64,000 nucleotides of DNA from Cyanophora paradoxa CCMP329 (lineage: Eukaryota; Plantae; Glaucophyta): the NCBI GenBank assembly GCA_004431415.1, contig QPMI01000436.1, forward strand, positions 124,001-188,000, written 5' to 3'. Below the pieces are notes generated by a model. It saw only the letters and a list, made by a program, of their open reading frames with translations. It did not search any database and was not told where the DNA came from. The translations under genes and the position numbers were made by a program. Position 1 is the stretch's first letter; each line of letters starts with the position of its first letter. Below are positions 33,790-62,183 of the stretch, in pieces.

Positions 33790-36700
33790 TCAGGAGGCGG
33801 CGCCATATTTGAAGAGAGGGGGCCTGTAGGGGGCGGCCACTGCGCGCGCGCATGCGCGAGTCAGCAGCAGGCTTGGAAAATCAAATCTGGACGTCTAAAC
33901 ATAGGAAGAACGCGAGGACGTAGCTATTGGAATTTCGAATTTCAGGAAAGCCCAGGCGACGTCCGCGCACCTCTGCGGAATTAGATTTCCTCTTAGGACA
34001 TCTTAGGACGCGCACCTCTGTCGTAGCTATTGGAAATCTAGGAAATAACAGAGAGACGTCCAGGACATTTAGATCTTATACATTAAGACACCCAGGCGAC
34101 GTCCGCGCATGCACCTCTGCGGGGCGCGGTGTCTCCAGGAACGCCGACGCCGACGTCGACGCCGGCATGCTGCGCGGATCCGGAGGCAGCCGCGGCCACG
34201 CCTGCAGCGGCAGCAGCATGTGCTGCAGCTGAGGTCGGCGCGGCCTCGAGTTCCGAGCTGAAGCTGCCTGCAGCTGTGGCCGGATGTACATTTATATGTG
34301 CCGCTGCAGCTGGCCAGTCGTCGTTGACGAGGCCCGGGGCACCCGCCGCAGTTCCCGATGCGGGCGGGGGCGGCGCCGCCCAGTGGGCAGGCACCGTCCA
34401 GGCCGGGAGGCTCGGCCCCGCGACCGGCGGGGCGGCGCCGGCCGTGGCTGCGGCCGCAGGCATGGGCTTGGGCGCCTTGCCCACGAGGCGCACGGCGATC
34501 GCGTTGCCGCTGCCCGACACCTCGAAGAGGTGCGGGAACCTGCGAAGAGGTGAGACCCGCACATCTATGGTCGACCCGCGCAGAAAAGATCTAGAGGCGA
34601 GGCGATCTAGAGATCTAAAAGCACGCCGGGCAGGGCCGGTGCGCGTACCGCTTGAGGTGCTCAATGAGCTTGGCGCCCGGTCCCATGGCATCCGCAAAGG
34701 TCCTCCCGGCCTGCATCTTGCGAATCAATATATAACAACAAAGCCAAGCGTACGCGGACCCTTCTAACGAACCTTCGCTTTGAAGCCGCCGCCCAGATTG
34801 GTAAGGGCGACCTTTGGGATGCCCTGGCGGTGACACTCGCGCAGTGCCGAGGCGAGGAACACGTTTGCCTCCTTCTCCGAGCATGCCGGCGCTGCTGGCG
34901 CTCCCGACCCCGAGAAGACCGTTGTCGACGACGACGGCTCGGGCCTCGGCTCCCGAGCCGCAGGCGGCATCGATATCGACGTCGACGTCGACGGCGCTTG
35001 CCGCTGCGACGGGGCTGTCCATGTATACGACTTCGCCCCGTCCTTGAGGGAGATGACGCAGGCGCCGCTGGCCACAGCCACCGCTGTGGAGGAGCTGGAG
35101 GACGACACCGAGAAGCTGCGCGGGTTCCTGAAGCAGAACGCCACGATGCTCTGCTGCCCGCTCAGCTCCTTGAAAGTCTTTCCGGTCTGCAGAAAAGCAA
35201 TGCGTTAAACCGATATATATAGATATCGGCAAGGCAGTTAGGAGGCAGTATAATTACCTTCTGCGAAAACAGCGTTCCCAGAGTAGAAGAGTCCGAGGAG
35301 CCCCCGCACCCTTGCAGGAGACTCACGAGGGTCGATGCCAGCTTGTCGAACGGCCTGCACCCATGCCATGCATATGTGTGCCAGTACAAGCACGTCAGCT
35401 CTGGCATCGAGCAAGTACTATCAATATTGATAAAACGTTTTTAACAACGATTACCAGGAGTACACCGCCGCCCCATCGTTCAGCAAAGACACCTGCATGG
35501 CGTTCTCCTGGCCCGTCACGTGGAACAGGCTGGGATACCTGCGCGCGCACACAGGAAATCGCGAGAAATCAGATCTAGGAGACGGGAGCGGAGATGTCGA
35601 CCGCACCGTCGGAAATAGGCGGAGAGCTTGCCGACGCCGAATTCCGAGGGCTCCTTGCCGGTCTGCACATCATCATTGGATTGGCATCATCACGCGGATG
35701 CAGAGCAAGCAAACACATGCGCGCGGTCGGACCTTCTGTCTGAACGCAGAGCCGAGCTTGGTCAACGTCAGGGCTCCATGGCCACTGGCTCCGGCCTCCC
35801 GCAGGATGGAGACGAAAGCTTCGTTCGCTCCGCTCTCGCCCGTCGTCGTCGGCACGTACGCGTATACAGCGGCCGGCGCCTGGGGTGCAGGCACGGCCGC
35901 GTGGATTCCGGTGCCGGTTGCGACTGCTGTCGTCGTGGATGCAGCCGGCGACCCCAGAGCTGCGGACGCGAGGGCGATGACGCAGTTCCCAAGGCAGCCG
36001 GCGCCAGTCACGGAGAAGAGGTGCGGGCGCTCGAGGCAGAAAGCCTCCATGCTGGGCTCGCTGCTGAGTTCCTTGAACTTCTTTCCTACCTGAAGGCACA
36101 TTTTTTAGTGCTAGATTTGTTTGCGGGTCGGATGCTGTTCAAATATTTGTTTACCTTCAGAGCGAACGCCGATCCCAGGGCGGAGGCCAGAGCTGAGCCT
36201 CCGCGCTCTTGAAGGACGCCCACGAGGGTCGAAGCCAGCATATCGGTCGGCCTGCGTAGGATACACATCGATGAGAGAGAATCGTTTGTGAGATGCCAAG
36301 CTTAAGTGAAGGACTGCATTTCACGATGTTACTTCAATTGTCTTTGCTGGAATTCGAATTGTGTTAATATGCTCAAGGACGGCGTACCATGGGTTTGATG
36401 TTGTGGGCATCGATATCGATGCGTGCGCCACACCGCTTCTGCCGGCGACATCATTCCGTAGGGAGACTCGGAAGTCGTTTTCCTGTCCAGACAACAAGAA
36501 TTCATCCGGGTACCTGCGCAAATTATCCAAATTCGAAAACGGTTTATATAATTAGAGTCCGGAAGCAATATATTCGTACTCAGAAAAGTACGTGGACAGT
36601 TTTCCCACGCCGAATTCTGATGGTGCCTTTCCGGTCTGTACGGGTGAAAAATAGTAAGAAATTAAAGCATTTAGCATCCGCGTGGGCCAGAGTAATTTTA

Positions 36701-38945
36701 TAAGAGGGTGTATATATAGATAGATTCGTGGCCGTGGACATGCACATGGGGCAGACCATGTATCTGAACGCGGATCCGAGTTCGGACGTCGAGAGGGAGC
36801 CGCCTGCGTTGCGGAGCGCGGCGGCGAAGATCTCATTGACGTTCACCCCGCCAGCTGCAGGCGCAGGCGCGTGGGTCATCTGCATGGGATTCGCCAGGCA
36901 CTCCGCCTCGAGCTGCGCGCGGAGGTGGGCGAGCTCCTCCGGCGAGTTCGTCTCGTGGTTGAACCTGCAAAATTTGTTCGAAACTTTCGAGTAATCAAAT
37001 AACGAAGGCTTCACCAGCACTCGGGGTGCGATCTCGGGCACGAGTGCTCTGTCCAGAACTTCGTGCAGGCGAATCCCTTCAACTTTCGCTTGTCTGCACG
37101 TCACGAATTCGCGGAACGAGTTACGCTTCGTTTTATACGTAAATTAGATGCTCTACACACCGTGGATTTTCGTGCGCATGCATTCCATGTCGTTGCACGG
37201 CAGTTTGCCAACGACCTGCGGACGAAGTTCCACTTCAGCCAGCTCATGTTATCTCCGTTCGATTGGGCGCACCGAACGATAGCAGATAGCTACAGAAGAT
37301 ATGCCGTTGGGATCATGATCAGCAGCTGCGTTGAAGTGGAAGGCTGTGTTCGTTGCCGGAGGTGCGGTGGCAGCCGCCACGGGGTTCGCCGGCACGGTCA
37401 GTAGTGGGGGCGCCGGCGACGCTGAATTCGAATTCACCCATCCGTTAGCGTCTGCGGTACCGGTGGTGTTCGAATATGCCAGGTCGGCGTCGAATTCAAC
37501 GTCAAGATCGACGGCGGGTGGCCACGATGCAGCACTGCTTGCGACGGCGGGTGGCCAGGAGGTCGCGGCGGCCTCCGGCGCCTCGAGCTCGGATGAGAAA
37601 CCGTTTGCGAAGGCGACGGCGGATATCGATGGCCAAGAGGTCGTGGTAGTCGCAGGAGCAGGGATCGCCGCTGGGACAGGAGCGGCTGGCGCCATGGCCA
37701 CCGGTACCGCGTTGGCGACGTCGACCGGTGCATGTAGGAATGGGCAGGGGACGGGCGCGTCGAGTTCCATGTTGACGAAGTCGTCTGCTGCGCGGACGGC
37801 GGCGAGGGCGATCTTGTACACTGTCCGGTCGATCTGGAATGACTTGTCCTGTCCGGCGAGTTCAAACATTAGCTTAAGATAATATATTTTATTGCCAGCT
37901 GCAGCGTGCGCACCATTGTGTCGCAGTAGTTCTCGAGGGTGAAGACGTTGGCCTCGCTGATGGCGAGCAGGGCGCAGAGCTTCTGGCGGTACTCGGCGAG
38001 CACCTCCGCGTCGCCCCCGAGCCGGTCCACCTGCGAGATCGCCACCACCGCCTTCCGCTCTGCCCCGCGCCCCGCCCCCCTCAGCCACCGCCGCCGCCGC
38101 CGCCGCGGGCCGCGCACTGAGGGCGAGGGTGGCGGCGCGGAAGAGGGCGGCGAAGCGGTCGAGGGTCTCCGAGCGCAGGTCGAGCTCCGAGTACGACACG
38201 ATGAACACCACCGCGTGGATCTGCCGCGACGCAAAGTTTACCGGTGCAAAGCTCACGGAAACTGCTTCCCCGCGCACCTTGCGCGAGGGATCCGCCTGCA
38301 GTCGCTCCCCGCGCGCCTCCAGCGCCGCCCGCAGCCCCTCTGCAGTCACGCACTCCTGCATGGCCCGGCGGCCCGCCGCGTCAGATGGACCCAAAGCCCC
38401 CGAGCACGACCGCAGACCTCCATGGGCCACTGGAGGGGCAGGGCGCCGTGCAGCATGAGCGCCATCTCCTCCCCGCGGTAGTTCGCCCTGCGCCGCGTCA
38501 GGTCCGGCCCACGCTGCCGCAAGCTGCGCCGCCCGCACCCGTCGATGCCCCAGCTGTCGAAGATGGCAACAGGAAGATCTGCCAATCCTCCGCGTCTGCT
38601 CGCTCACCGTCATGACAAATCGTTAGCGAAAAGACGGGTGCGGGCGGACGCCCACACCGGTTGAGACGAAAGCGAACGAATTCGTTCGTGACGTGCTCCG
38701 TGTGGCCCCCCGCGACCGCCGGCGCCGCCACCCGCTCGCTCAGGCACGACACCAGCGAGTTGAAGAACGAGCTCTGCGCCGCCCGTCAACAGCTGCGGCT
38801 GGCCCGGCCATGACGCGGGCACGCGCGCCTTGCCGCTGCCGTGGGGTCCGCAGAGGAGGATGTGGGCCCCGCCCGCCGCGGCCGCCGCCGGCGCCGCGTC
38901 GAAAATGTCGCCCGCAAAGTCCTCTGCCGAGCGGCGCTTCAGACA

Positions 38946-38978
<33 letters not shown>

Positions 38979-40363
38979 GCGGGCGGCGCGCACGGAACTC
39001 AAGGATGAACGCGTCCTCCAGCGTCGGGATGGGCGCGTCCCGCTCGTCCCGCAGGCTGCCGGCGCGCGTCAAGCGGCACCGTGGCGGGCGTGGGGCGGGG
39101 GCGGGCACCTGAACTCGATGTGCTCGGGCAGGGCGTCGAGGGCGGCGTGCAGGGCACCCGCCGAGCCCTTCGCCTGCGCCGGCAGCGCCGCCCGCACCGT
39201 CGCCTCCGCCAGCGGCGCCACGCCCGCCGGCAGCGCCGCCGTGTGCCGCCCGAAGTACGCCCCGCCAGGGAAGACGAGCCGCGCGCCCGCCGGGATGGGC
39301 GCCCGCCCTCGTTCCGCACCGTCAGCTCCAGCTGCAGGTCCTCGCCGAGCCGCAGCCGCCCCCGCCCGCCGAGCAGCAGCCGCGCGCTCACCGCCGCCAG
39401 CCGCTCCGGCGTCGCTCCCGCCGCCCCGCCCCGAACGACCCCTCCGCCACCCGCCGCAGCTCGCCCGCCGCGAAGACCCGCCCCGCCGTCGCCACCTCCC
39501 GCAGCCGGCCCGCACCCGCCCCCGCCCGCAGCGTCACCGCTGTGACCGTCGCGCCGCTCTGGCCCCGCCGCCTCAGCCCACAGCGAAACAAACGAGAGAG
39601 CCGCGCGCACCTCGCGCCGCAGGCGCTCCGCTGCAGCCGCCGCCGCGTCCTCGCCGCCCGCCGCCGCGCCCCAGTCCGCCGAGGTCAGGACCCACACGTG
39701 CCGCTGCGCCTCCGCGGCCGACTGCGAAGCGAAGTGCTCCCCGCACGCCTCCAGCGCCGCCGACAGCCCCGAGCCGGACCCGCCGTCGCCAGCGCCGGCA
39801 CCGCCAGCTACAGGCTCTGCCGATACGCCCTCAGCGCTGGAAGCGCACCGCGCGCACAAGAGCCGTGCAGAGCGCACCCTCGTGCCGCCCGAGCGCCTCC
39901 TCGACGCCCTCCCGCGACGCGGTCAGCGGGCAAAGCAGCTCCGCGCCGCCGCGCCTGCAGCGGACGACGCCAATCCGGCAAGGCGCGCTGCGGCCGCGAT
40001 CTTTGACGCTGCCGAGCGCCGCAGCGAGCACCTCCCTCGCCGCGCTTCGCTGCAGCTGCCAGGCCGGGCCCCCGTTGGCGTCGCTGACATGTAGCGCGGC
40101 CGTGGCGCCTTCTGCGCTTCGGATCCCGTCCGCGCCGCTTCCGTCCGCGCCACCGCCATGCAGGACCTGCGCGCATGCGCGCGCGCGGGCGTCGGAGTCA
40201 GCGGTCCGGTCATGTCATGACCAGGTCCGAATTCGAAGACCGCGCGCGCGCGCGAGCGAGAGGGAAACATGAATGGGCGCACGATGATGACGTCCCGCGC
40301 TGGCTGATGGAGCGCCGCCGGTCTCCCGCGCAGGTGCCGCGCCGGCGCCTCGAGCTCCCGCAT
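33790..40363 (-). CDS. Paralog B: vWA-like + Ig/FW-like + IFI44-like GTPase + tandem CCCH + 5 LOTUS/OST-HTH-like domains
   Basis: MRELEAPARHLRGRPAALHQPARDVII|...; HILLCGPHGSGK|SSFFNSL...LPVAIFDSWG...IHAVVFIV...SQVD...LENY...AADDF; ICYRS|VVGKLPCNDMECARKIH|DKRKLKGFACTKFWTEHSCPRSHPECW|FNH; repeats such as LASTLVGVLQERGGSALASALGSAFALK|VGKKFKELSSEPSMEAFCLERPHLFSV. The last exon VAAPYRPPLFKYGAAS* is homologous to that of paralog D. A few G-run frameshifts. Confidence 0.85.
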
Positions 40364-40721: not shown

Positions 40722-43700
40722 TTAGGCTCTCTCTCCGGCGCGCCAGCGGTCGATGGCGGTCTTGAGGGAGCGGTTGGGGACGACGTCGCGCCCCACCACC
40801 TGCGGATCCGGAGGCCGTCAGCTGCAGGCCGGCCCCCAAAAACAAATTTGCCCGGATGGGTCGGATAGGTGGGCCGCCCCCGGCGGGCCGGGGCCCGCGG
40901 CCGCAAACAAAGATATTATTCCTTAAACATCTAGAGTTTGGGCGATTTCAAATGGAATGCATCTTTGGATTGAAGGTTGAAGGGCGCCTGCATGAGAGAA
41001 AGAGACTCTTCGGCCCGCACCTGCTCGCCGGTGAGGGGGCTCTTCCCGTGCCACGCGAGCCAGTTGTCCACGGCGCCCCGCTGCGCCCGGCGGTAGGCTC
41101 AAATTCAAAGGGGCGGGGCTCGCGATCGGGGGCGGGGGCGGGGCCCGGGGCGGAAATGCTGGATCCGGAAATCTTCTCACCTCGTAGCTGTGGCCCGTGC
41201 CGTCCGCGATCATCACCGGGTCTGCACGCACGTTAATAGAAGGCTCCGATTCGAAGGCTCGTTAATAGAATTTTAACTAGATTCATAAAGGGGCTCAGGT
41301 TCAGTTTGGGCGCACCGACCATGACCTCGTGGGTGATGGGGCACAGGAACTCGGGCGGGGGCGGTCCGCTGGGGCGCGCCGCGAAGGGCGCCGGCAGGGG
41401 CGCCGGCGCGGCCGCCGGCGGCGGCACGAGGGGCGGGGGCGGGGCGGGGGCGGAGCTGCCCAGTCTGCTGCCGGCGGGCTCGGCCTCTGGACATGCGCCG
41501 GGCGGGCGGCGGCGGCGGCGGCGGCGGCGCCGGATCGAGAGGGCGCGGCCTTGGGCTTGGGCACCGGTTGGGCCGGGGCCGGGGCCGGGGCCGCGGCAGG
41601 CTTCGATCTGGCCTTCGGGGCTGCGGGCGCTGCCGGCACCGCCGCTGGAACCGCCCGCGGCGCGGCCGCCCGCCCGGCGAGGCGCACGGTCGCCTTGTCT
41701 CCGCTGCCCGACACCTCAAAGAGATCCGGGAATCTGATGGGGAGGTTACAATAGACTCAATAACAACAAGCGTATAATAACTTGGATAGGGTAATCATAT
41801 AATAATAAAGCTATAAGCGTTTCCAGGAGGGGTGAGGCCTCTCGGCGCCACGGTACTCTATTGGCAGGACACGGGCCCCCCCACTGCCCGAGGGATGGTC
41901 GGGGGCCTGATGGTCTTATAACAATGATAGCGACAGCAAAGTCGAATAATAAGAGGTCCGGGAATGTGATCACGACGAGACGTGAGCGGTTTTCCCATCA
42001 AAAACTCGAGTATTTAGAGACGACCCGCACAGAAGCTTTAGGGTGGCGAGCAACCCGCATAAGAACCTCGCCGAGCGGGGTCGTGTGCGTACCGCTTCAG
42101 GAACTCAATAAGCTTGGCGCCCGGTCCCGCGGACTCCGAAAACGACTGTCCCGCCTGCGCTCGCATTTCATTGCCAGAGAAGGTTTCGGGCCACGCATTT
42201 CATAGTAAGATCAGGTTTCGGGCGAGAGGAGTACTAGTGTCCGCAGTTTTAAAAAGAAAGAGAAAGCGCGCCTTCGCCTTGAAGCCGTCGACCAGGGTGG
42301 TGAGGGCGACCGACGGGAGGCCCCGGCGGTGCCAGTCGCTCAGCACATGCACGAGGAATGCCTTCGTCATGACATCCGATCCCGCGGCCGGGGCTGCGGC
42401 TGCAGGCCCCGCCTGCAACTCCACGTGCACTGGCCTCGCGGCCGCCGGGCGGGGCGACAGCATTGAGGACGCGGACGTCGCAGCAGACTCTGCCGTCGGC
42501 GCCGTTCGCGCTCGCTCCGCTGCCGCCCGCGCTGGCGCCGGCACCGGTGCCGCTGCGCGGGGTGGCTCCAACTCGACCGGTCCCGCCAGCCGCGGCGACA
42601 GCACCGACGACAAAGCTGCGGGAGGTACATACGCCGCCGGCGCCGTACGCGTGCGAGGTGGTTCCGCTGCCGCCAGCTGCAGCGCTGGCACCGCTGTGCG
42701 CGATGGCGCCGCTGCCGCCGCCCCGCGCGGCGCAGCCGAGCCCACGAGGGAGACGACGCAGGCGCCGCCGGCGGCGCCCACGCTGGCGACGGCGAAGCGC
42801 TCGGGGTGCGCCAGGCAGAAGGACAGGATGCTCGGCTGCCGGTCGCTGCTGAGCTCCTTGAACGGCTTGCCCGCCTGCGAGAATGGTAGCACCTCAGTCA
42901 TAAACAGGGCGCATTGAATTCGAGTAAATTCCAACAGACGATTCCAGCGACCTTTTTCGAAAATTCCTTGCCTAGAGAGGAAACGTCAAGCGAGCCCGCG
43001 GACTCCTGCAGGATGCTGGCAAGGGTCGCCGCCAGCGTGCTGGCCGGCCTGCAGGGCAAACGCTTAGCCGGCGGGACGTTTGATTGCAGTAGGGCGGGCA
43101 GCGGCTGTAGCTTCGTATACGTATACGTATATACTTATGCACCATGGGCTCGACGAAGCCGACGGCGGCTTCGAGGCCTGGGCATGCGCAGGAGCCGTCG
43201 GCAGCTGCAGCCCAGGGACGAGCTGTGCGACGGAGCTCGACAGAGCCGACGGAGCGTGCGCTGGAGCTCGAGCCGCATTGACGAGGCAGAACGTCTGCGG
43301 CCCGGGCGCCCCGGTGCCGGCGACGCGGAAGAGGTCGGGGCGGCGCTGGCAGAACTGCGCCATGCTCGGCTGTGCGCTCACTTCCTTGAACTTCTTCCCC
43401 GCCTGGGCTCGAGATGGGTTAGAGAAGCGCTCGCAAGCGATCAACAGCGTTAATATTGCATACCGCCACGGCGAATGCAGGGCCTAACGAGCCGCCGTTG
43501 AGAGAGCCCCCCGCGCTCTCCAGAACCTTTACCAACGTGGAAGCGATCTGTTCTTCCGACCTGAGAAGCCGAAGAGATGAGGGAGGAAGCGGAAGATCTG
43601 ATCATGAGGTTCTGTACCAAAATGAATGGAGGTGTACAGACGGTGATGCAGCCTTCGACTTCGCTGGAGGGGCTACGAACTGCTGCGGCGGCGCAGACAC

Positions 43701-45264
43701 GGACGGAGACACAGCTCCACCGCTCCGCAGGGACACTCGAATGTCGTTCTCGCGTCCCGTCACCTCGAAGAGATCGGCGTGCCTGCACGATCGAAAGTTT
43801 AATGCATCACGATCACGCCCAGAACAGGAGCGGGGGAAGGCGGAAAAGCTCACCGGCGGAAGTGGGACGAGAGCTGCGCGACGCCCAGCTCCGACGGACT
43901 CTTGCCGGTCTGAGGAATTCGTATTCGATGTCAACGTGAGCGGCAAATGAAGAAGGATATTCCGGCGATCGGCGCGACCTTCTTCCTGAATAGGATGCCG
44001 AGTTCCGTCGTTGACAGAGCCGCGCCGGCCTCGCGCAGCACAGCCGCAAAGATTTCATTCACGTCGCCGGCGCCGCCGACACCTGCGGTTGCTGGCGCGG
44101 GGAGCAGGCCGGGAGCTGCTGACGTAACCGTTTTTGCCGCAGCGGCTGGTGATCGCGCAGCGGTTGGCTTCTGTGCGAAGGATGCTGCGGGGGCGGCAGC
44201 TGCCGCAGCCACAGCTGGAGCGGCGGGAGGAGCCGCCAGGCACTCCGCCTCGAGCCGCTGGCGGAGGCGGGCGAGCTCTTCCGGCACGTTTGTCTTGTGG
44301 TTGAACCTGCAAAAATCGAATGAGAAGGAGACATCGTATTAAATTATAAGTGTCGATGTAAACTTCAGGCAAGATCGAAATTAGTTAAACCCTTACCAGC
44401 ACTCTTTGCCCGACCGCCCGCACTTTCCGGTCTCCCAGAACTTGGTGCAAGCGAGGCCTTTCAGCAGGCGCTTGTCTGCAGGCTCCGAATTAATCAGATC
44501 TGGACGCGAGCGGCGTCAAAGAATTCCAATACGAATATGTACCGTGCAGTTTCGGGCACTTAGAGTCTCTGCACCCGCTGTACATGGGACTGATCTGCGG
44601 GCGAAGCTTCAGCCAGGCTGCATGGGTCAGCCCTTATAGGGCCGCGTACCGCAAACACGCAGAAGTCTCCGAGCTTCAAGGGGACATCTGGAGGCTTGCC
44701 GTTCCCTTGTGCAGCAGACTTGGATGGCGGGGCGGGCTTTGCGGCGGGGGGGCCGGGAGTAGCAAAAGTTGCGAGAGCGGGGGATGGCGCGACCGCCGGG
44801 ACCGGTGCGGCGGCTCGAGCAGGGGCCGGCGGCGTGGCTGGCGTGGCCGGAACGGGCCGGCGCGGAGCAGATGGACGAGGAGTTGCCGCGGGCGGCGCGA
44901 GCGGAAATGGGCATGGGACGGGCCCGTTGGCCTCCATGCAGAGGAAGTCGTTGGCGGCGCGGACGGCGGCGAGGGCGATCCGGTACACCGCCCGGTCGAT
45001 CCCAAACGACTTGTCCTGCGCCCGGCCCGTCACATCGGGATCGGCCGCAGCGCTACAGGCGGGGCCGAGGCCGCGGGCGAGGGCGGGGGCGGGCCTTGGT
45101 GTCGCAGTAGTTCTCGAGGGTGAAGACGTTGGCCTCGCTGATGGCGAGCAGGGCGCAGAGCTTCTGGCGGTACTCGGCGAGCACCTCCACGTCGCCCCCG
45201 AGCCGGTCCACCTGCGAGATCGCCACCACCGCCTTCCGCTCTGCCCCGCGCCCCGCCCGCCTCA

Positions 45265-45299
<35 letters not shown>

Positions 45300-46139
45300 G
45301 GGCGGCGCACTGAGGGCGAGGGTGGCGGCGCGGAAGAGGGCGGCGAAGCGGTCGAGGGTCTCCGAGCGCAGGTCGAGCTCCGAGTACGACACGATGAACA
45401 CCACCGCGTGGATCTGCCGCGGGGCGAAGTTCGCCGGTGCAAAGCTCACGCTGACTTCCGCCCCGCGCACCTTGCGGGAGGGGTCCGCCTGCAGCCGCTG
45501 CCCGCGCGCCTCCAGCGCCGCCCGCAGCCCCTCCGCCGTCACGCACTCCTGCCCGCCGCGTCAGATGGATCCAAAAAACCCGAGCACAACCGCGGACCTC
45601 CATGGGCCACTGGAGGGGCAGGGCGCCGTGCAGCATGAGCGCCATCTCCTCCCCGCGGTAGTTCGCCCTGCGCCGCGTCAGGCCCGGCCCGCGCCGCCAC
45701 TCGCCGCGCCGCCCGCACCCGTCGATGCCCCAGCTGTCGAAGATGCCCACGGGCAGGTCTGCCAGCCCCTCGTGCCTGCCGGCCGGCCGTCGGGCGGTGC
45801 CGGCCTCTGCCGCCAGCGAACGAGCCGGGCACGCGCACCGGTCGAGGCGGAAGCGGAAGAACTCATTTGTGACGTGCTCCGTGTGGCCCCCCGCGACCGC
45901 CGGCGCCGCCACCCGCTCGCTCAGGCACGACACCAGCGAGTTGAAGAACGAGCTCTGCGCCGCCGGTCAGCGGCTGGCCCGGCCATGACGCGGGCACACG
46001 CGCCTTGCCGCTGCCGTGGGGTCCGCAGAGGAGGATGTGGGCCCCGCCCGCCGCGGCCGCCGCCGGCGCCGCGTCGAAAATGTCGCCCGCAAAGTCCTCT
46101 GCCGAGCATCCGCTTCAGACAGCGGCGGCGGCGGCGGTG

Positions 46140-46179
<40 letters not shown>

Positions 46180-47524: not shown

Positions 47525-47858
47525 TGATATCCGGCCGCGAGAGCTCGACCGCTTCCGACGACAGCGTACCCCTGGGCCGGCTGAGCGGCGGCGGCGGCGC
47601 GATGCCCGCAACTCCGCTATAGCTATTAACGCTGATCATGGCCTACGGGCACACCGAGCGCCTTCCATGACAGCTGGGTTCGATCGCGAGATCTAGAGCG
47701 CCAGCTGCAGCTCAGCGGCTAGTACTAGTTCTCGCTCGCCTACATTGCTACAAGGCTAGCTACAGCTCCCTGAGCGATGAAGAACTCAATCGATCACACG
47801 CGCGTCGCTGGAAGAACAAATCGAGGGTGTCGAATAACTAGGATCAAATCGAGGCGGG

Positions 47859-51307: not shown

Positions 51308-51373
51308 CGCGCCGCCGCCGCCGCTCAGTCGGCCCAGGGGTACGCTGTCGTTGGAGCGGTCGAGCTCTCGCGG
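51308..51373. promoter_or_regulatory. Very short divergent intergenic region (putative bidirectional promoter), also copied upstream of paralog C
   Basis: The predicted ATGs at 51307 (-) and 51374 (+) are 66 bp apart; an inverted homologous copy lies at ~47525-47610. Confidence 0.45.
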
Positions 51374-54300
51374 ATGCGGGAGGCGCGGCACCTGCGCGGG
51401 AGACCGGCGGCTCTGCTGCAACCCGCGCGGGACGTCATCATCGTGCGCGCGCTCCCCTTCGCGCCCCGGCTTGTGCGGAAAGCACCGCAGCACACGAGCG
51501 CCGTTCGCTGACGCGAATGCACGCGCGCGTGCTCAGGTCTTACACGGCGATGACGTGGCTGGCAGCGGCTCGCTCGCTCGGGATGGGAAAGCGGAAGGCG
51601 CTCACGCCGCGGCCAACCATGTAGACAGCGGGGCGACCTGGAAGCAAAGCGCGGCGAGGGAGGTGCTCGCCGCGGCGCTCGGAAGCGTCGGGGATCGCGG
51701 GCGGGGCGCCCCGTGCCGGGTCGGCGTCGTCCGCTGCAGGCGCGGCGGCGCGGAGCTGCTCTGCCCGCTGGCCGCATCGCGGGAGGGCGTCGAGGAGGCG
51801 CTCCGGCGGCACGAGGGTGCGCTCTGCACGGCTCTCGTGCGCGCGGTGCGCTTCTAGCGCTGAGGGCATCGCGGCAGAGCCTGTAGCTAGCGCTAGCTAT
51901 AGCGGCGCTGGCGACAGCGGGTCCGGCTCGGGTCTGTCGGCGGCGCTGGAGGCGTGCGGGGAGCACTTCGCTTCGCAGTCGGGCACGGAGGCGCAGCGGC
52001 ATGTGTGGATCCTGACCTCGGCGGACTGGGGCGCGGCGGCGGGCGGCGAGGACGCGGCGGCGGCTGCAGCAGAGCGCCTGCGGCGCGAGGTGCGCCCCGC
52101 CCCCTCGTTCGTTTCGCTACGGGCTGAGGCGGCGGGGCCAGAGTGGCGCGACGGTCACGGCGGTGGCGCTGCGGGCGGGGGCGGCGGTGGGGGCGGGCGG
52201 GCTGCGGGAGGTGGCGACGGCGGGCGGGTCTTCGCGGCGGGCGAGCTGCGGCGGGCGGCGGAGGGTCGTTCGGGCGGGGCGGCGGGAGCGACGCCGGAGC
52301 GGCTGGCGGCGGTGAGGGCGCGGCTGCTGCTCGGCGGGCGGGGGCGGCTGCGGCTCGGCGAGGACCTGCAGCTGGAGCTGACGGTGCGGAACGAGGGACG
52401 GGCGCCCATCCCGCCGGGCGCGCGGCTCGTCTTCCCCGGCGGGAGTACTTCGGCGGCACACGGCGGCGCTACCGGCGGGCGTGGCGCCGCTGGCGGAGGC
52501 GACGGTGCGGGCGGCGCTGCCGGCGCAGGCAAAGGGCTCGGCGGGCGCCCTGCACGCCGCCCTCGACGCCCTGCCCGAGCACATCGAGTTCAGGTGCCCG
52601 CCCCGCCCCACGCCCGCCGCGGCGCCGCCCGACGCGCGTCGGCAGCCTGCGGGACGAGCGGGACGCGCCGATCCCGACGCTGGAGGACGCGTTCGTCCTC
52701 GAGTTTCGTGCGCGCCGCCCGCCGCCGCCGCCGCCGTTGCCGCCGCCGCCGCCGTCGTCGTTCTGACGCGCCGCTCGGCAGAGGACTTTGCGGGCGACAT
52801 TTTCGACGCGGCCCCGGCGGCGGCCGCGGCGGGCGGGGCCCACATCCTCCTCTGCGGCCCGCACGGCAGCGGCAAGGCGCGTGCACCCGCGTCATGGCCG
52901 GGCCAGCCGCTGACGGGCGGCGCAGAGCTCGTTCTTCAACTCGCTGGTGTCGTGCCTGAGCGAGCGGGTGGTGGCGCCGGCGGTCGCGGGGGGCCACACG
53001 GAGCACGTCACGAACGAGTTCTTCCGCTTCCGCCTCGACCGGTGCGCGCCCCCGCCTCGTTCGCTGGCGGCAGAGGCGGGCACCGCCCGACAGCCGGCCG
53101 GCAGGCACGAGGGGCTAGCGGGCCTCCCTGTTGCCATCTTCGACAGCTGGGGCATCGACGGGTGCGGGCGGTGCAGCGCATGGCGGCGCGGGCCGGGCCT
53201 GACGCGGCGCAGGGCGAACTACCGCGGGGAGGAGATGGCGCTCATGCTGCACGGCGCCCTGCCCCTCCAGTGGCCCATGGAGGTCCGCGGTTGTGCTCGG
53301 GCGTATCGGGGCTATCTGACGCGGCGGGCCGGGCAGGAGTGCGTGACAGTGGAGGGGCTGAGGGCGGCGCTGGAGGCGCGAGGGCAGCGGCTGCAGGCGG
53401 ACCCCTCGCGCAAGGTGCGCGGGGCGGCAGTTGGCGTTAGCTTTGCACCGGCAAACTTCGCCCCAGTCGACGTGACCTTTGCGTCTTTGACTGTGCCCCG
53501 CGGCAGATCCACGCGGTGGTGTTCATCGTGTCGTACTCGGAGCTCGACCTGCGCTCGGAGACCCTCGACCGCTTCGCCGCCCTCTTCCGCGCCGCCACCC
53601 TCGCCCTCAGTGCGCCGCCCGTGCGCGGCGCCAGCGGCGGCGGCGGCTGAGGCGGGCGGGGCGCGGGGCAGAGCGGAAGGCGGTGGTGGCGATCTCGCAG
53701 GTGGACCGGCTCGGGGGCGACGCGGAGGTGCTCGCCAAGTACCGCCAGAAGCTCTGCGCCCTGCTCGCCATCAGCGAGGCCAGCGTCTTCACCCTCGAGA
53801 ATTACTGCGACACCAAGGCCCGCCCCCGCCCCCGCCCGCGACCTCAGCCCCGCCTGTAGCGCTGCGTCTGATTGTAAGGTACGCAGGACAAGTCGTTCGG
53901 GATCGACCGGGCGGTGTACCGGATCGCCCTCGCCGCCGTCCGCGCCGCCAATGACTTCCTCTGCATGGAGGCCAACACCGCCGTCCCCTGCCCCTTCCCG
54001 CTCGCACTCGCGCCGCCCGTGGCAGCTCCGGCAATGGCGGCAGCCCCTCGTCCAGCTGCTCCGCGCGCACCTGCTGCGGCCGCGTCATCCAAACCACCAG
54101 TCCCTGCTCGAGCCGCCGCACCGGTCCCGGCTATCGCGCCATCCCCCGCTTTCGCAACTTTCGCTGCTCCCGGGCACCCCACCGCAAAGTCTGCCCCGCC
54201 ATCCAAGTCTGCTGCACAAGGGAACGGCAAGCCTCCTCCAGCCGCGCCTGCCACGCCACCGGTCCCTCCTCGAGCAATCGCATCCTTTGCCTCTCCGGGG

Positions 54301-57300
54301 AGCTCTGCACCAACAACCAAGTCTGCTGCGCAAGCAAACGCCGAGCCCGCATCTGTATCTCTCACAGGAAATTCGAAGGCCGCGTCACCGCCCGTACAGG
54401 GCAGTTCATTTTGGTACATACAGCTTCTCAAATCCTAGAGCCTCTGCGTCTTTTCTCACCCTAATGATGTAAATATTTTCGGCTTCTCAGGTCAGAGGAG
54501 CAGATCGCTTCCACGCTCGTCAAGGTTCTGGAGAGCGCGGGGGGCTCTCTCAACGGCGGCGTGATAGGCCGTGCATTCGCTATGGCGGTGCACAGCGTCC
54601 AAACCGCTGATTGCGAGCGCTTCTCTGACCGTTTCCGATCCCAGGCGGGGAAAAGCTTCAAAGATGCCAGCGGGCAGCGGAGCGCGGCGAAGTTCTGCCA
54701 GCGCCGCCCCGATCTCTTCCGCGTCGCCGGCGCCGGGGCGCCCGGGCCGCAGACGGTCTGCCTCGCAGATCAGACCGGCCGTCCTGCCCCTTCGAGTTAC
54801 TGGTGGCTTCCTATCCTCGGCCTCATCAAATCTGCGCGTGTTCCTGAATCATCTTCGATATTTCTCCAGGCTGCCGGAGAAGCTAGCTTCGACCCTCGTG
54901 AGCCTCCTGCAGGGCTGTGGCGGCTCAGCATTGGCCTCTGCACTGGGCGGCGAATTTGCCTTTGAGGTAATGCTGACGCGAATAACGCTGAACTCGGGCG
55001 CACCTTGATCTCGATTCAGGCAGGAAAGAAGTTCGAGGAACTCAGCATTCAGCCCAGCATAGAGATTTTCTGCATTGAGCGCCCGCACCTCTTCTCCGTT
55101 GCTGGCGCCGGCTCTGGCAATGGGAGATGCACCGTCTCTCTCAAAGACTTCGCGGTCGCAGTGCCAGCAGCGGCATCAGCACTCTCAGCACCGGGCTTGA
55201 GACTGCAACTTCAAGGCTGCAACTTCCAAGACAAGGCTGCAACTTCCAAGACAAATTCATCTGCAGCGCCCAAGGCTTTCTCGTCGCCCGCACGTGCCTC
55301 CGCCCCAGGTGGGCAGTTGTGCATGTACATGTACATGCGAATGCTGATGGTCGCCTATTCATATGCCTAGATCCTGAAGACTACTCGCTAATCTGTCAAC
55401 GATCGGTGCTCTATCCTCTCGCTCTTTCCCTTCACATCTTGCGCTTCATCTTTCGCCGGATTTGAGATGAGCTGCGATGCCAGATTGTCTTCAACCAACC
55501 GTGTCTCGACAAGGACTGCACAAAAGTCCACGGTGAATATTATTTGGCCTGAAGCGATGTTTAAATTTGCGTACCAGTGCACGCGATTGTTCATGCCCTG
55601 AAATGGTTTTTGCGACGGCAGATAAGCGCCTCCTAAAAGGCATCGCGTGCAAGAAGTTTTGGACGGACGGCTCGTGTGGGAAATCGGGCAGTGAATGCTG
55701 GTGAATTGGTTTTGGTTTCCAATCTTTGATTTTCCGTTGTTTTAAATTTCGATCCGATTCATTGTGATGCACAGGTTCAACCACGAAACGAAGTCGCCTC
55801 ACCTGCTAGCGCTGGCCCTCATCCGCCAGCGGCTCGAGGCGGCGTGCTTGGCGCCGAATTCGAAAGGCCCGGCGGCCCCTCGGCCTCCCGCGATCGCGAC
55901 AGCTGCAGTCCCCGCATCGTCGACGCCGACAGCCGTCGCGAAGGCCTCGTCGCCGTCAACGCCCGTGCCTGGCGTGCCTTGGTATGCTCGCCTTCAGGAT
56001 TTTATCGATGTGCGAGTGCACTCAAAACCGCTGCTACTCCCGATCGCAGGTCCGAGGACCGGCTTACGTCCACGCTTGTCAAGCTGCTGGAGGACGCTGG
56101 GGGCTCCCTCACTGGCGCCGGCATCGGCGCGGGCTTCAGGAAAATGGTGCTCCGTTCTATAATTATGTGTAGTCATTTTGCAAGTTTGTAAACGCTTCTC
56201 GTTCACTACCGCCTCTCACTGCTTAGGCGGGGAAGAGCTTCAAAGAGGCCAGCGGGCTGCCGAGCATGGGCTGGTTCTGCCAGCGCCGCCCCGACATCTT
56301 CCGCGTCACCGGCGGCGTGGGCGAGCGCGTGCAGCAGTCGTTCCATCTTGCTGCTCACGGCTCGTCCGCCGCTCCTTCTCCCCCCGTGTCAAAGCACGCA
56401 AGGCCAGCCGCAGCGCAAGCGCACGCCGCACCCCCTTCAGCGTCTCCCCCGAGCAGATACACAGCAGGGCAAAGTGGACAATCAATCCCGACCGTCATGC
56501 GTAAGGCCGGATGCCGCAGCGAGAACGCGCACGCGTGCAAAGCGCTCGCTGACTGACACACTCTCAGCGGTGGCGCTGGTCGTGGAGATTCTTGTGGATG
56601 TGCTGCGCTCGAGCACCCGCACGGGCCTGCCCAAACGCATGAACGCTGCTGATCTCGCCCAGGTGTTCAACGTTCGGGTGCGCCCCATTAAATTTGGCGC
56701 CTGTTAGTCATATATATATTTCTCATGAATTCTGCCCTAAGGTCGGCAAGTCGTTCTCCGCCGCTTTGGGCGAAAACATCTCGCCCGTCGCTTTCTGCCA
56801 GCGGTTCGAGATTTCATCGAAAATTTAAACCCGCCGCGCTCGAAGTAATCGTTTCACCGTCAACGCCATTATCCGCAGCTATCCGCACCTGTTCGCGATA
56901 TCCTCCTACTCTGACAATAGTGGTCAGAAGTTCGTTGACGTGAGTCTTCGGGCCGACGCTCCCGTATCTTCCAGAGGTCTGCCCTAGACCTTCCATAACC
57001 GATCATGAAGCGCGTATGGAGCGCTGAGAACTCAAATCGACTGCAGACGCCAGCGGTGTGCCCCCCGTCATCGAAGGCATCATCCAGCTCGAGCCGCCGC
57101 CGCTTTCGAGTTTCCCAACGATCGCTTCGAACTCGGATATCGATGCGGGAGCTTCGACCTCTTTCCCGCCGGGCTACTATCCGGTCCCACCGCCTCCCGC
57201 GATCACTGCGGCCCGCAACCAGCCTTCCGATCCTGTTCCTAAACCTGCCCCCGTTTCTCGGCCTAGTCCTTCCGCGCCGCCCTCCGGATCCCAGCCCACC

Positions 57301-57824
57301 GGATTTGTACCCGCATCCGGATCTTCCCAACACATGCCGGATGCCGAAATCGTGGCGGCTCTGCGGGAGTGTTTGGGGGAGAGCGGCGGCTTCGCGCAGC
57401 AGTCCGTCCTCGCCTCCAAGTTCCACAAAAAGGTGCGCCGGCCCGTAATGTTATCGAATTTGCGCGTTAATATTTATATTCTAACTGTGCTCACCCCGCC
57501 AGACGGGGCGCACTTTTAAGGAGGCGGCCTGGAAGCAAAACTTCCTCTCCTTCATCCGGCGGTAAGCGCGGCTTCGACTTCATAATCCTTGTATTTAAAA
57601 GAAATACGTAATCTATCATTTTGGATTTAAAAGAAATACGTAATGTATCTATCATTTTGATTAGGACAATCGACTGACTCTCGGATGCCCCACGCGCCCC
57701 TGGCCATCTAGATACCCCGGGGACTTCCGGCTGGTGCCCTCGGGGAAAAGTGCGGACTCGAGGAACACGTCGGCCGACATCATCGCCCTCGCGTCGGATC
57801 CGCTGTCGGAGGCGGCGGCGGTCT

Positions 57825-57859
<35 letters not shown>

Positions 57860-60800
57860 GCGGCGGCGCCCTCGCGACTGGCCCTCTCGCGATCGCAGGC
57901 TGCGGCGCCGACGGCGGCGCCGGCGGCGCCGGCCGGCGGAGATGTTAATGTTGCATGCGTAGGGCCGGCCGCGGCGGTACCAGTGTCATCTCCGCAGCCC
58001 GCAGAGGCGTCGCTTCCCCTCCGGTTTCTAAGGAGGGCGCCTCTCCTGCCCACCCCGCAGCCGCCGCAACCCTCGCCTGCCGCTCCAGCCCAGCCTGCCC
58101 CCGCCCCCAGCGCCAGCGCCAGCCGGGGTCCCTCCGGATCCGCGGCGCTGCGCATGCCGGAAGGGGCGATCGTGGCGACTGTTGACTCCAAGGCAGCAGC
58201 CGCCGCCATGGCTTCCGTGCACGCGCCGTCCTCGCTGGCTTCCACCCCGGGCCCGGCCTCGCAGGCCATGATCAGCCCGCTCCCTGTCACGACGGCCGTG
58301 GCCGCGCCGGCTGCAGCGGCACCGGCGCCGACGCCGGCCGCTCTCCCATTGCCTCCGCCTCCGCAAACGATGGCCGACCTGGAGGACTCCTCGCTCATCT
58401 GCCACGGCGCGGTGCGCGGCATCGAGTTTCCGTCGCCTGCTCGCGATTGCCTTTGCATGTCAAGTCTAGATCTGGCCGGGGGCTGATTCTGAGCTGAACG
58501 GCAGATATTATCTGGACAGCCGTGCCTCGACAAGAGCTGCGCGAAAATTCACGGTGCATAATTATATTGCGTCGGTTTCATTTTGGGCCGCGCTCATGGG
58601 AGGCTGCATGTGCAGACAAGCGCCTTCTCAAAGGCATCGCGTGCAAGAAATTCTGGACAAGCGGTTCTTGTGGGAAATCGGGCAGCAAATGCTGGTGAAT
58701 CTCTTTGCAGATGCTATTCGAATTCGCGCACTTGTTTCCATATGTTGATTCTGGATAAACTTTTGTTTTCCAGGTTTAACCACGAGACGAACTCGCCCCA
58801 TGCACTCGCCCGCATCCGTTTGCGGCTCGAGGCGGAGTGCTCGCGATCGGGTCTTCCCGCGGCTTCAGCTGTGGCAACGGAGTTGGCGGCGGAGCGGTCG
58901 GCGCAGTCGGTAGCAGCCGCGGCCGACGCCCCCGCGCATGCGGCAGCCACAGCAACAGTCGCTGCTCCTGCGACAGTCTCGATTGGCAACGATGCTCCTG
59001 CAGAAGCTGCAGCGGTCGCTTCTGCTGTTGCAGCTGGCGCTTCTGCGGCCATTGCGACGTCGACGGCAGCGGCTGCAGCAACGGTCGCTCCTCCGACAAC
59101 GGTCTCAACGGTCAACATCGCTTCAAATGCTGCAGCGACCGCGTCCAAAGCAGACGCTACTGCTCCCTCAACAGCGGCCGCACAGAAGCTGGCACTCGCG
59201 CCAGCAGTGGACCTCAAGACACCTGCAGCTACGGCTGCAGCTGCAGCTGCCGCCGAAGCATCTGCAGCCGCGCCTCCGTCTCAGGCCGCGGTCGCTTCCA
59301 AGGCCTCTACCACCCACTCGGAGGCGTCAGTCACGAAGACATACACGGCCACAGAACAAGCGCCTGGGCCGGCGTACGCCCTCTCCAGGCCTGCAGCTGG
59401 CCAGAGCCACGGGGACGGCTACCTCAACAAGATTTTCACAGAGTTGTTGGGCGAAGCAGGCGGTTTCCTATCTACCGCCCAACTTGGCTTGCGTTTTCGG
59501 GAGAAGGTCGGGGAGATCGCGGCCGAGCTGCTGTTACCTCTCTCCTCGGAGTGTGGAATGGACAGGCTCTCGGCCCACTTGCGCCGGTGGGAACCCGTCA
59601 CTGCTTTCCTTCGATCTCTTCTTTTGAACAGTCTGTTGTGCAGATTTCCCGACCTCTTCGACATTTCTGGGCAGGAAACCGCCTTTCGAGTGTCCCTGCG
59701 GAGCGGCGTTGATGGGACGGGTCTGCGGCCGCCTGCGACCGCACCGGTACCGGCGATACCGAGCAAACCAGTTTGGTGCGCCTCTCAAATTTTCCTTTTC
59801 TCCTTCTCACTTATATCCCGCCCAGCATCCCGCCACCACAGGATTGTGCACACATAAATTCCCAGATAGCAAAAGCTACGCAGTTGCCACAGCCCGAACG
59901 TGTGCTGTAACCCGGCCCTCCCATCGACCGCAATGGGCACGTGCACGTGTCTGAGATGGATCGATATCGCAGTGGCGGAGCAGATCGCTGAAACGCTGGT
60001 CGACATCCTCCGCGCGCGGGGGCCGCAGGAATGCGACGTGGCAACACTCGCACAGGCGTTCGACAAGCAGGTACGCGTGTAACGCACTTTATAATAATTA
60101 GCTAGATCTTAAAAGCCCATTCGGAATCGCGACCTCGAATTCGAATTCGAATTGGCTGACCGGGGCCGTTGCCGCAGACCGGCAAGTCCTTTGCTGCAGC
60201 TCTTGGGAAGAATGCCAACGCATCCCTGACCAGTTTCTGCATGTGGTTCGCATGGAATTATATTTCCGCTTCCGCTTTACATTTGCGCTGCAAATGCCAT
60301 TAACAATTTTAATTCGGGCTACTCTCTCCACCGTCAGCTATCCGCACCTGTTCTCGCTCCGTTGTAATTGCAAAAGCGGGAAGAAGCTTAAGCCTATGGT
60401 ATATGTGACGCTTCGGTCCGATGCCGCTGCCGGTACGTATACGCTTCAAATTAGTTTCACGCTTTTGGGGTGCTGCTTACTGTGGGCTTCGCAACGGGCG
60501 TGCAGGAGTTTCGAATTCTCTGCTCCCATCTCCGCAGCCCGCAGCCGCATCGCTTCCCCTCCGGCCGCCGCCCTTCGTGCCCGCGGCCGGCGCCGGGGGG
60601 ACGGCCCTCCTGCCTACCCCGCTGCAGCCCTCGCCTGGTTCTGCAGCTGCCACCCAGCCCGCGTTCCTTGGACCTCCCCTTTCATGGACCACGACCTCCC
60701 TCGCGATCGGCTTTAATGTCTCCAGCCATGAACCACCGCTTTCATTTGTGGGGCTCGACGCTCGTGCTCCAACCAACGCTCCCGCAGCCGCCCCATTCTT

Positions 60801-62183
60801 CTTCTCGCAGCCGACATGTACAGCCCCATCCACGCATATGGCTGGAGCGACTCTGGATTTCCCGCCGGGCTACCATCGGCTGCAGCCTCAGACGCAGCCG
60901 CAGCCTGCCCCCGCGCCCAGCGCCGCCAGCCCGCGGCCGGGTCCCTCGGGATCCGCGGCGCTGCGCATGCCAGAAGGGGCGATCGTGGCGGCGCTGCAGG
61001 AGTGCCTGCGGGAGGCCGGCGGCTCCGCCCCGCCGGCCGCTCTCGCCTCCGCCCTCCGCGCCAAGGTGCCCCAACTTCAATTCATATAACTTCTTCTCAG
61101 AGTCTTCTTCAAGGCTTTAGCTTCGTCCTCTGCCAGGTTGGGCGCACGTTCGTGGAGGCGGCGGGGGACCCCAACTTTCTCGCCCTCGTCCGCCGGTGGG
61201 CAGATCTGGATCTAGAGCCGTCGAAAATTCAACCAAAATACTCTAGATCTTAGCAGTCGAATTCTACTTCATATAGCTCTAGAGATCATAAGCTTCGCTA
61301 TTTGATCGTTTACGTTATCCCTCGTCCGCCGGTGGGCAGCTGCAGACTCGGTGCAGAGCCGTTGAAAGGAGAATAGCAATTCTACATTACTTTAGCAGTC
61401 GAATTCCACTTCATGTAGCTCTAGAGAAAATAAGCTTCAAATAGCTCTGGAGATAATAAGCCACTTTCCTCGCCCTCGTCCGCCGGTGTGCAGATCTGGA
61501 TCTAGAGCCCTCGAGACGAGAATAGCAGTCGAATTCTACTTCGTACAGAGATAATAATAAGCTTTGCTGTAAAATCATTTACGTTATCACACACACACTA
61601 AGAGAATGTTCGGACGTGTCCCTCGGGCTCTGTCTGAGTGTGCCTTTGTCTGTGCGCGCAGGCACCCCGGGGAATTCCGGCTGGTCCCGGCGAGCTCGAG
61701 CCCCGCCCCGGGCCTGGGCCAGGCCGGGTGCGAGGGTGGCATCGCCTCCGCCTCGGCCTCTGCCGGATCCGGAATCGTTGCGATCGCCCTGGCGTCGTCG
61801 CAGTCGGCCGCACTGCCGCCGGCTGCTCCTAAGCCAATCGCCTCGAGCTCGTCAGCGTCTTCACAATCACCGGCCCCGTCTCCCTCGCCCCACAAAGGTG
61901 CGCGCGGCCGGCGCCCGGCCCGCAGCCACCCAAGCGTGATTCAAATTTGATCGAATATTGAATATATACTGGTGCTGACGACGGCCGGGCGCGCGCAGTG
62001 GCCCCGCCCTATAGGCCTCTCCTGCACCGCTACAGCCCCCCAGCATGCGCAGCGGCGCCGGCGCCCGCGCCCGCGCCCGCGGCAGCGGAGCAGCCAGCTG
62101 CTGTGGTCATGGCAGCCGATGGGTCCGACCAAGGCGCGGAGCTCGCCGAGGGCCGAGGCCAGCGGTGCGCCGGCGGACTATAG
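51374..62183 (+). CDS. Paralog D: vWA-like + Ig/FW-like + IFI44-like GTPase + 8 LOTUS-like domains + 2 tandem-CCCH units
   Basis: Core 51374-53965. LOTUS-like units at ~54490, 54870, 56050, 56570, 57333, 59415, 59965 and 60967. CCCH pairs LICQRS|IVFNQPCLDKDCTKVH|DKRLLKGIACKKFWTDGSCGKSGSECW|FNH (55370-55790) and LICHGA|ILSGQPCLDKSCAKIH|...CKKFWTSGSCGKSGSKCW|FNH (58375-58795). Apparent G-run frameshifts near 52180-52460. Confidence 0.82.

Follow-up and report, generated by a model that had tools for sequence, protein, structure and literature searches.

In mammals, fish and cnidarians the GTPase IFI44 has antiviral activity or is induced by viruses, and in fish it has expanded by duplication (10.1101/2020.02.24.963900, 10.1101/693333, PMC13319465). 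The family is defined by a G1 motif GxxxxGKS, a G3 motif DxxG followed by a hydrophobic residue, and a G4 motif that is often incomplete and is degenerate in human IFI44 (10.1101/2020.02.24.963900). IFI44 ranks among the antiviral genes that animals induce most consistently; its molecular function has not been established, and published accounts of it disagree (10.1101/2020.02.24.963900; PMC6712396). Minimal LOTUS (OST-HTH) domains bind G-rich or G-quadruplex (G4) RNA, from bacteria to animals (PMC7498356), and OST-HTH domains recur with CCCH fingers and U-box or RING domains in protists and plants, a theme that links ribonucleoproteins (RNPs) to ubiquitin (PMC2848206). These themes meet in a 64,000-nt stretch of the glaucophyte Cyanophora paradoxa CCMP329 (assembly GCA_004431415.1, contig QPMI01000436.1, positions 124,001 to 188,000 of the forward strand), referred to here as the window, in whose positions all coordinates are given. 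Three paralogous genes, A, B and C, each join a head with an IFI44-type GTPase to a tail of CCCH fingers and LOTUS repeats, and the tail of B is predicted to end in a U-box. The component domains are known; the architecture itself is real and undescribed in the literature searched (few subscription journals), where neither the fusion nor IFI44 in protists or algae is described. An earlier sequence-only reading of this DNA had likewise known of no such protein.

Genes A, B and C were rebuilt by hand from the sequence, and the models were compared with database predictions. Their start and stop codons lie at 40363/33790 (A, minus strand), 47524/40722 (B, minus strand) and 51374/62183 (C, plus strand), matching to the base the three spans drawn by the sequence-only reading. 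The models contain 92 introns (86 GT-AG and 6 GC-AG) with a median length of 65-70 nt, and encode proteins of about 1,500-2,500 amino acids. Exon-by-exon Pfam scans were nearly blank, because the domains are split into exons of 20-50 amino acids. Genes A and C have an open frame from exon 5 through the stop codon. Single-base insertions or deletions occur in G-runs of exon 4 in each of the three genes, and a further frame break affects B in a C-run near 41,440, where one added base is needed to reach the U-box. The independent EukProt annotation gives the same head-tail fusions for all three genes. Its models g12366, g12367 and g12369 are faulty in places: they contain frameshift work-arounds in exon 4, the model of A has a spurious end, that of B is missing LOTUS 4 and the final exon of the U-box, and that of C stops inside LOTUS 8.

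Transcription was assessed from RNA contigs aligned to gene B between 40710 and 46700, and for A and C from gene-specific letters. Seven probable RNA runs from two studies contain 44-48% of the sequence words of gene B, approximately the expectation for exons alone. The splice joints in the contigs of B agree with the modelled GTPase introns, including one GC-AG intron, and a contig base inserted at 46636 abolishes the exon-4 frameshift. One contig of 811 nt leads out of exon 13, where the final helix of the GTPase and the initial cysteine of the CCCH fingers lie together, and continues over the two CCCH exons and LOTUS 1 as far as LOTUS 2; a 203-nt part of it equals the sum of 2+79+52+70 nt of modelled exons and ends at 44719, also the end of a DNA contig. 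A second contig, of 1436 nt, spans LOTUS 2-4 and the linker preceding the U-box. Letters specific to A and to C are present in RNA contigs as well, and one gapless contig shows exactly the nine substitutions of C across two apparent deletions of that gene, which are therefore assembly errors. Assembly errors also account for the frameshifts in exon 4 of B and C, and all three copies are expressed. In B, the GTPase and the CCCH/LOTUS exons belong to one spliced gene, as had been supposed from the sequence, although the contigs fall short of full-length transcripts; separate genes for GTPase and tail are ruled out there. It is very improbable, then, that the fusions are products of annotation or assembly, with separate genes or mis-joined heads and tails. 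Homopolymer errors do occur in this assembly, reads were placed on gene B only, the contigs do not prove one full-length transcript, and the U-box frame depends on one extra base; however, exon 13 and the 811-nt contig join head to tail, the 1436-nt contig covers LOTUS 2-4, three distinct heads are each seen in RNA, and an independent annotation arrives at the same fusions.

Table 1. Genes and domains of the locus, with positions in the window
Feature	Position	Strand	Content or basis
Gene A (EukProt g12366)	33790..40363	-	vWA, beta-rich domain, IFI44-type GTPase, CCCH x2, LOTUS x5; 27 exons
Gene B (g12367)	40722..47524	-	vWA, beta-rich domain, IFI44-type GTPase, CCCH x2, LOTUS x4, U-box; 27 exons
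Gene C (g12369)	51374..62183	+	vWA, beta-rich domain, GTPase, LOTUS x2, then 2 blocks (CCCH x2 + LOTUS x3); 41 exons
IFI44-family GTPase, A	37765..38870	-	paralog alignment and profile
IFI44-family GTPase, B	44935..46050	-	G1 GxxxxGKS, G3 DSWG + hydrophobic residue, degenerate G4 SQVD, ENY motif
IFI44-family GTPase, C	52835..53970	+	paralog alignment and profile
Degenerate vWA, A	about 39460-40300	-	counterpart of B domain
Degenerate vWA, B	46660..47460 (approximate)	-	Pfam VWA_2, E 0.0012
Degenerate vWA, C	about 51435-52250	+	counterpart of B domain
Beta-rich domain, A	about 38994-39400	-	counterpart of B domain
Beta-rich domain, possibly Ig/NBR1-FW-like, B	46191..46600 (approximate)	-	all-strand prediction
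Beta-rich domain, C	about 52310-52707	+	counterpart of B domain
Tandem CCCH, A	36955..37284	-	ligand pattern
Tandem CCCH, B	44297..44661	-	ligand pattern; Pfam sub-threshold; spliced in RNA contig
Tandem CCCH, first pair, C	55394..55784	+	ligand pattern; Pfam sub-threshold
Tandem CCCH, second pair, C	58400..58783	+	internal block duplication; ligand pattern; Pfam sub-threshold
Minimal LOTUS repeats (five), A	34479..36855: 36855-36453, 36389-35973, 35843-35478, 35456-35067, 34883-34479	-	
Minimal LOTUS repeats (four), B	41673..44077: 44077-43722, 43619-43286, 43144-42749, 42382-41673	-	
Minimal LOTUS repeats (eight), C	54412..61710: starts 54412, 54801, 55980, 56497, 57334, 59408, 59896, 60967	+	
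U-box (four exons), B	40740..41360	-	Pfam U-box 33.5 bits, cut-off 21.4; in frame only if one base is added near 41,440

Among 1.84 billion representatives, a stop-free stretch spanning the GTPase exons matched five proteins, all from Cyanophora paradoxa: the three window genes (on tig00020629) and, elsewhere in the genome, g15614 (tig00000042) and g6184 (tig00001000). A search with a single GTPase sequence gave no match, and only a profile built from the five paralogs reached IFI44. Its sole non-self match at E<=10 (8000 candidates) was a mackerel interferon-induced protein 44-like (E 8.3e-7, 81% covered). With hhalign, the same profile aligned to the fish IFI44-like protein with 97.5% probability (E 6e-12, 212 columns), in a register that brings together G1, G3, the HxVxF strand, G4 and the xNY motif, at an identity of only about 21-23%. 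The motifs that define IFI44 proteins are present in the Cyanophora GTPases: G1 and G3 are invariant in all five paralogs, and the incomplete G4 reads SQVD or SYxD. G domains of the GBP and IFI44 type lack the catalytic glutamine of Ras. Among language-model neighbours in the Atlas, the top clusters (0.95 and 0.94) are unnamed chordate and mollusc G-domain proteins, and two streptophyte clusters are also present. No Cyanophora paralog matches the TLD domain, which is N-terminal in vertebrate IFI44, and a vWA domain takes its place; the fish match (P0006) likewise shows none, so TLDc is not universal in IFI44 relatives. Profile and motif matches support membership of the G domain in the IFI44 family, and the assignment made from the letters alone has held.

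The conserved core proposed by the sequence-only reading stands for the degenerate vWA and P-loop domains, whereas its Ig/FW label for the domain between them rests below threshold (N_BRCA1_IG, Pfam E 0.045). The clearest vWA belongs to paralog g6184 (Pfam VWA 55 bits, fold Z 17.5), in which the strand of the metal ion-dependent adhesion site (MIDAS) reads DVSEH. That strand is lost in A, B and C, which do not show the DxSxS pattern, and their vWA domains are probably degenerate and metal-free to judge from these residues. A head model from five sequences, with a predicted local distance difference test score (pLDDT) of 48, was usable in its vWA part only, and an Atlas fold search with it gave generic vWA rows. 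The beta-rich domain found no match in a PDB sequence search, and homology to the N-terminus of a metagenomic relative (L003) was ruled out (hhalign 1.3%).

LOTUS and CCCH domains bind RNA, and U-boxes recruit E2 enzymes. The C-x-C-x-C-x3-H ligands are intact in eight fingers, which form one tandem pair each in A and B and two in C, as the fingers noticed beforehand had suggested; the Pfam scores remain below cut-off (E 0.03-0.13), while the first finger of g6184 passes PF00642. Similarity to PARP12-type fingers is weak and below every threshold (E 0.05; Atlas 0.78). The U-box, seen from the outset in one of the genes, lies in B and is absent from A and C. Its exons are intact and have RNA depth; their in-frame link to the rest of B is predicted, the C-run near 41,440 having been masked in the RNA comparison. 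It is 58% identical to the U-box of g6184, with which it shares a DGTG motif.

The tails had been described as arrays of four to eight winged-helix repeats, and the counts are five, four and eight. Against the OST-HTH profile PF12872, which has a cut-off of 23.8 bits, A scores 34 bits and its repeat A3 by itself 25.3; three of 15 repeats match the profile at E<0.1, and the others were assigned by mutual homology. A model of one repeat (pLDDT 89) has four helices and two strands; helices 2 and 3 are separated by a short additional helix, as is characteristic of OST-HTH, and the glycine of that family's G-h-x-p-h motif is invariant among the repeats. The best fold matches of the model are Tejas (Z 9.6, root-mean-square deviation 2.1 over 69 residues) and TDRD5 (Z 9.1); the LOTUS domains of Tejas, TDRD5, TDRD7, Egalitarian, MARF1 and Oskar all match at Z 8.1-9.6, and LOTUS proteins make up seven of the top twelve. 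Searched against PDB sequences, the LOTUS profile matched only a spike peptide, and spuriously. The LOTUS identity given by the sequence-only reading is thus borne out. Vasa-binding eLOTUS was rejected on a reading of the sequence: the wing leads into unconserved Ala/Pro/Ser linkers or directly into the next repeat. Because a C-terminal extension helix is not conserved, the repeats are assigned to the minimal LOTUS class, and RNA binding by them is predicted from that family.

Unrelated winged helices score close behind. That the repeats bind DNA or Z-form nucleic acid in the manner of Zalpha, making these ZBP1-like or chromatin-associated proteins, draws on the fact that I73R of African swine fever virus (ASFV; Z 8.7) and DNA-binding winged helices lie within 1 Z unit of the LOTUS matches. 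Zalpha domains (ZBP1, ADAR1, E3L) bear a signature of Asn and Tyr on helix 3 together with a Trp on the wing; these residues are not among the conserved columns of the repeats, which also gave no Pfam match to Zalpha. With OST-HTH over its cut-off, LOTUS proteins prevailing among the folds and the extra helix in place, this identity is improbable.

Within a search limited to similar lengths and shared words, the vWA-GTPase head was found in Cyanophora proteins only. The GTPase itself is more widely spread. Two metagenome contigs (L004, L008) carry animal-type IFI44 exons, and six others (L001-L003, L005-L007; the gene lies at 5677-8107 in L003) hold an intron-bearing eukaryotic GTPase gene of about 385 amino acids that is closer to the Cyanophora GTPase (E about 1e-7) than to fish IFI44, with no vWA, CCCH, LOTUS or U-box nearby. 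Samples of this kind are lichen or rock communities containing green algae. IFI44-type GTPases thus appear to occur on their own beyond the animals, the long fusion being so far confined to the one species. PADLOC gave no meaningful match, and the one bacterial match covered the P-loop only.

Heads and tails have had different histories. The 5' 2.7-3 kb of the window genes are 84-89% identical in DNA, whereas the tails align only patchily. Head introns can still be aligned between paralogs (z mostly 7-16), and homologous CCCH introns mostly cannot (z below 2.5 in 17 of 18 comparisons). Synonymous divergence (dS), approximate given a third-position GC content (GC3) of 0.90-0.97 in the head, is 0.09-0.18 for the GTPase versus 0.48-1.0 for the CCCH blocks. 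On these grounds, young homogenized heads sit on older reshuffled tails, the process being presumably gene conversion or re-duplication of heads. The repeats share one phase-0 intron at the same site in 16 of 17 cases, their types are mixed across genes in a tree (8 label changes versus a shuffled mean of 8.0), and in C a block of two CCCH fingers and three LOTUS repeats was duplicated internally (C4 pairs with C7, C5 with C8). The remaining repeat, C6 (59408-59704), lacks the common intron and is 8 amino acids longer there. The ratio of non-synonymous to synonymous divergence (dN/dS) is 0.13-0.20 for the GTPase, 0.13-0.65 for LOTUS pairs and 0.13-0.83 for CCCH, and by this pairwise measure both heads and tails are under purifying constraint. 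A tail that diversifies, as the sequence-only reading had it, is therefore borne out as module shuffling on a homogenized head; positive selection on the tail is unsupported, all pairwise dN/dS values being below 1.

Outside the window, the g15614 model stops within the GTPase, and g6184 is arranged as vWA, beta-rich domain, GTPase, two CCCH fingers and U-box; their heads are 41-48% identical to those of the window. The likeness of the B and g6184 U-boxes indicates that A and C have lost an ancestral U-box, and that LOTUS arrays, found nowhere but at the window locus, were gained there; grafting of a U-box onto B is ruled out by the same likeness to a paralog that has no LOTUS repeats. A ubiquitin output, earlier ascribed to the locus, would consequently be confined to B and is not common to the three genes.

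Further traces of rearrangement lie at the gene ends. Genes B and C, which are inverted copies around an intervening gene, have about 90 nt of upstream sequence in common (47524-47616 and 51293-51374), so the 5' leader belongs to the unit that was duplicated or converted. Genes A (33790-33839) and C (61999-62030) end in a homologous short exon beginning V-A-x-P-Y-R-P, where B has its U-box exons, which suggests a single shared loss or replacement of the U-box. Late introns of C (61195-61662) and A (33840-34115) repeat their own donor region in short tandem copies, a sign of ongoing local duplication. It is nonetheless unlikely that the locus represents largely neutral birth and death, that is, a recombination-prone, GC-rich site whose proteins are made while the differences among arrays have no adaptive meaning. 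Tandem duplications common in the window, LOTUS dN/dS values of 0.4-0.65 that suggest relaxed constraint, the lost MIDAS, and a U-box lost twice, or once with conversion, would all fit such drift; yet all 17 repeats retain the residues that are invariant in the fold, and their frames stay open across 92 introns even though dS rises to above 1; every CCCH ligand is intact.

Taken together, these observations favour, with a probability of about 0.45, a Cyanophora branch of IFI44-family GTPases turned into RNA-bound surveillance scaffolds, most likely in cell-autonomous defence. The proteins would most likely be GTP-switched scaffolds of RNA granules, one member having a ubiquitin output. From a g6184-like ancestor, the window locus would have acquired an intron-bearing minimal LOTUS module that was then multiplied and swapped between copies, while conversion or re-duplication kept the heads alike. 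The CCCH pairs and LOTUS arrays may bind structured or G-rich RNA multivalently, and the Ala/Pro-rich low-complexity linkers may gather the proteins in RNP granules, where crowding would cause the GBP/IFI44-type heads to dimerize in a GTP-dependent manner and partners would be recruited through the vWA domain. B, and g6184 with it, might then attach ubiquitin to proteins bound to the captured RNA, with A and C serving as U-box-less sensors or sequestering partners, and differing tails would broaden the range of RNAs recognized. Defence is favoured because of the IFI44 head and the pairing of constant head with variable tail; a constant signalling head and a shuffled sensor tail in a tandem cluster are the usual pattern of immune receptor families. 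The bolder proposal of an RNA-sensing immune-receptor cluster, with a converted constant IFI44 head, exon-shuffled LOTUS/CCCH sensor arrays and one ubiquitin ligase member, is held tentatively and is rather doubtful at present.

Several points weigh against defence. The nucleotide switch is putative, as the degenerate G4 leaves GTP specificity unproven. Human IFI44 restricts respiratory syncytial virus without the G1 motif or P-loop (10.1101/2020.02.24.963900), and IFI44 has been reported as proviral too (PMC6712396). No relatives were found in viral contigs or phages, no pairwise dN/dS value indicates positive selection, none of the three proteins has a nuclease or other killing domain, and the transcripts are present in ordinary-looking RNA runs of two studies. 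A combination of LOTUS, CCCH and U-box domains is also compatible with ordinary control of RNPs (PMC2848206). That known theme is why a role outside defence deserves consideration: the proteins could be endogenous regulators of RNP granules or mRNA turnover, in stress, the cell cycle or a sexual stage, with the GTPase as a switch, in the manner of MARF1, plant LOTUS-CCCH proteins and the LOTUS proteins of Plasmodium. Expression without any known challenge and the detection of purifying selection alone agree with such a role. It is possible, but the odds are against it: the head comes from a family whose studied members are infection-induced, the make-up of the tail differs sharply among three adjacent copies, and the architecture was not found outside Cyanophora paradoxa, unlike what is expected of a conserved regulator. 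An RNA-sensing immune-receptor cluster as in the bolder proposal, if true, would place IFI44-based antiviral defence far outside animals and suggest that RNP complexes are the natural target of IFI44 GTPases. The finding covers one species and known domains, with function inferred. None of the three outcomes that the sequence-only reading had named as contrary to it was encountered, namely separate transcripts, profile searches failing to recover IFI44 or LOTUS, and a conserved single-copy housekeeping gene.

Between B and C, on the minus strand at 47800-51270, lies a gene unrelated to them (presumably g12368). It is arranged head to head with C, about 110 nt from the start codon of C, and has a cluster of Cys pairs, coiled-coil stretches and no Pfam match in the two frames tested. 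Directly downstream of A, a 6.5-kb block (27000-33500) of about 50% GC, in a neighbourhood of 65-70% GC, contains no convincing open reading frames. A ribosomal protein L13e match occupies 10064-11101 (minus strand), as two Pfam stretches within one open frame. At the left end, a 1.4-kb direct repeat (1-1429 and 3518-4937, 99% identical, 3.5-kb spacing) encloses a tandem array with a unit of 125-130 nt (1657-2400) and is either a recent duplication or an assembly artefact.

The value of the locus lies in what it may say about better-known proteins. Intracellular immunity in early-branching algae has been little described, and a cluster that combines like heads with shuffled tails offers a concrete candidate; a natural fusion of an IFI44-type GTPase to RNA-binding arrays and a predicted E3 ligase hints at action on RNPs. 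Compared with IFI44 and IFI44L, the whole GTPase domain aligns and both families have expanded as tandem paralogs, but the Cyanophora proteins add an N-terminal vWA and beta-rich domain and a C-terminal CCCH/LOTUS/U-box tail, lack TLDc, and reach 1,500-2,500 rather than 350-450 amino acids, in a host not known to have an interferon system. With MARF1/Limkain-b1, TDRD5/TDRD7, Egalitarian and Oskar they share tandem arrays of minimal LOTUS domains (6-8 in MARF1) of the same fold; they differ in having no NYN nuclease, Tudor, RRM or exonuclease domain and no conserved eLOTUS helix, and in being fused to a GTPase, a partner not named in the part of PMC2848206 consulted. By domain content, the whole proteins would not count as IFI44 orthologues, since TLDc is absent, nor as MARF1 or TDRD members, since there is no nuclease or Tudor domain. 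ZAP/PARP12 and RNF213/GBP resemble them in manner of working only, through CCCH recognition of RNA and an NTPase with ubiquitin output on a foreign target; the Cyanophora proteins have no WWE/PARP, AAA or helical stalk and are not members of those families. The LOTUS-less g6184 has the same type of head, the two CCCH fingers and the same U-box, and keeps a canonical vWA. Finally, the tail of B follows the same logic of RNA binding plus E3 ligase as the protist and plant combinations of OST-HTH with CCCH and U-box, RING or B-box (Anantharaman, Zhang and Aravind 2010, PMC2848206), but in Cyanophora that tail is carried on a vWA-IFI44 head and varies among adjacent paralogs.

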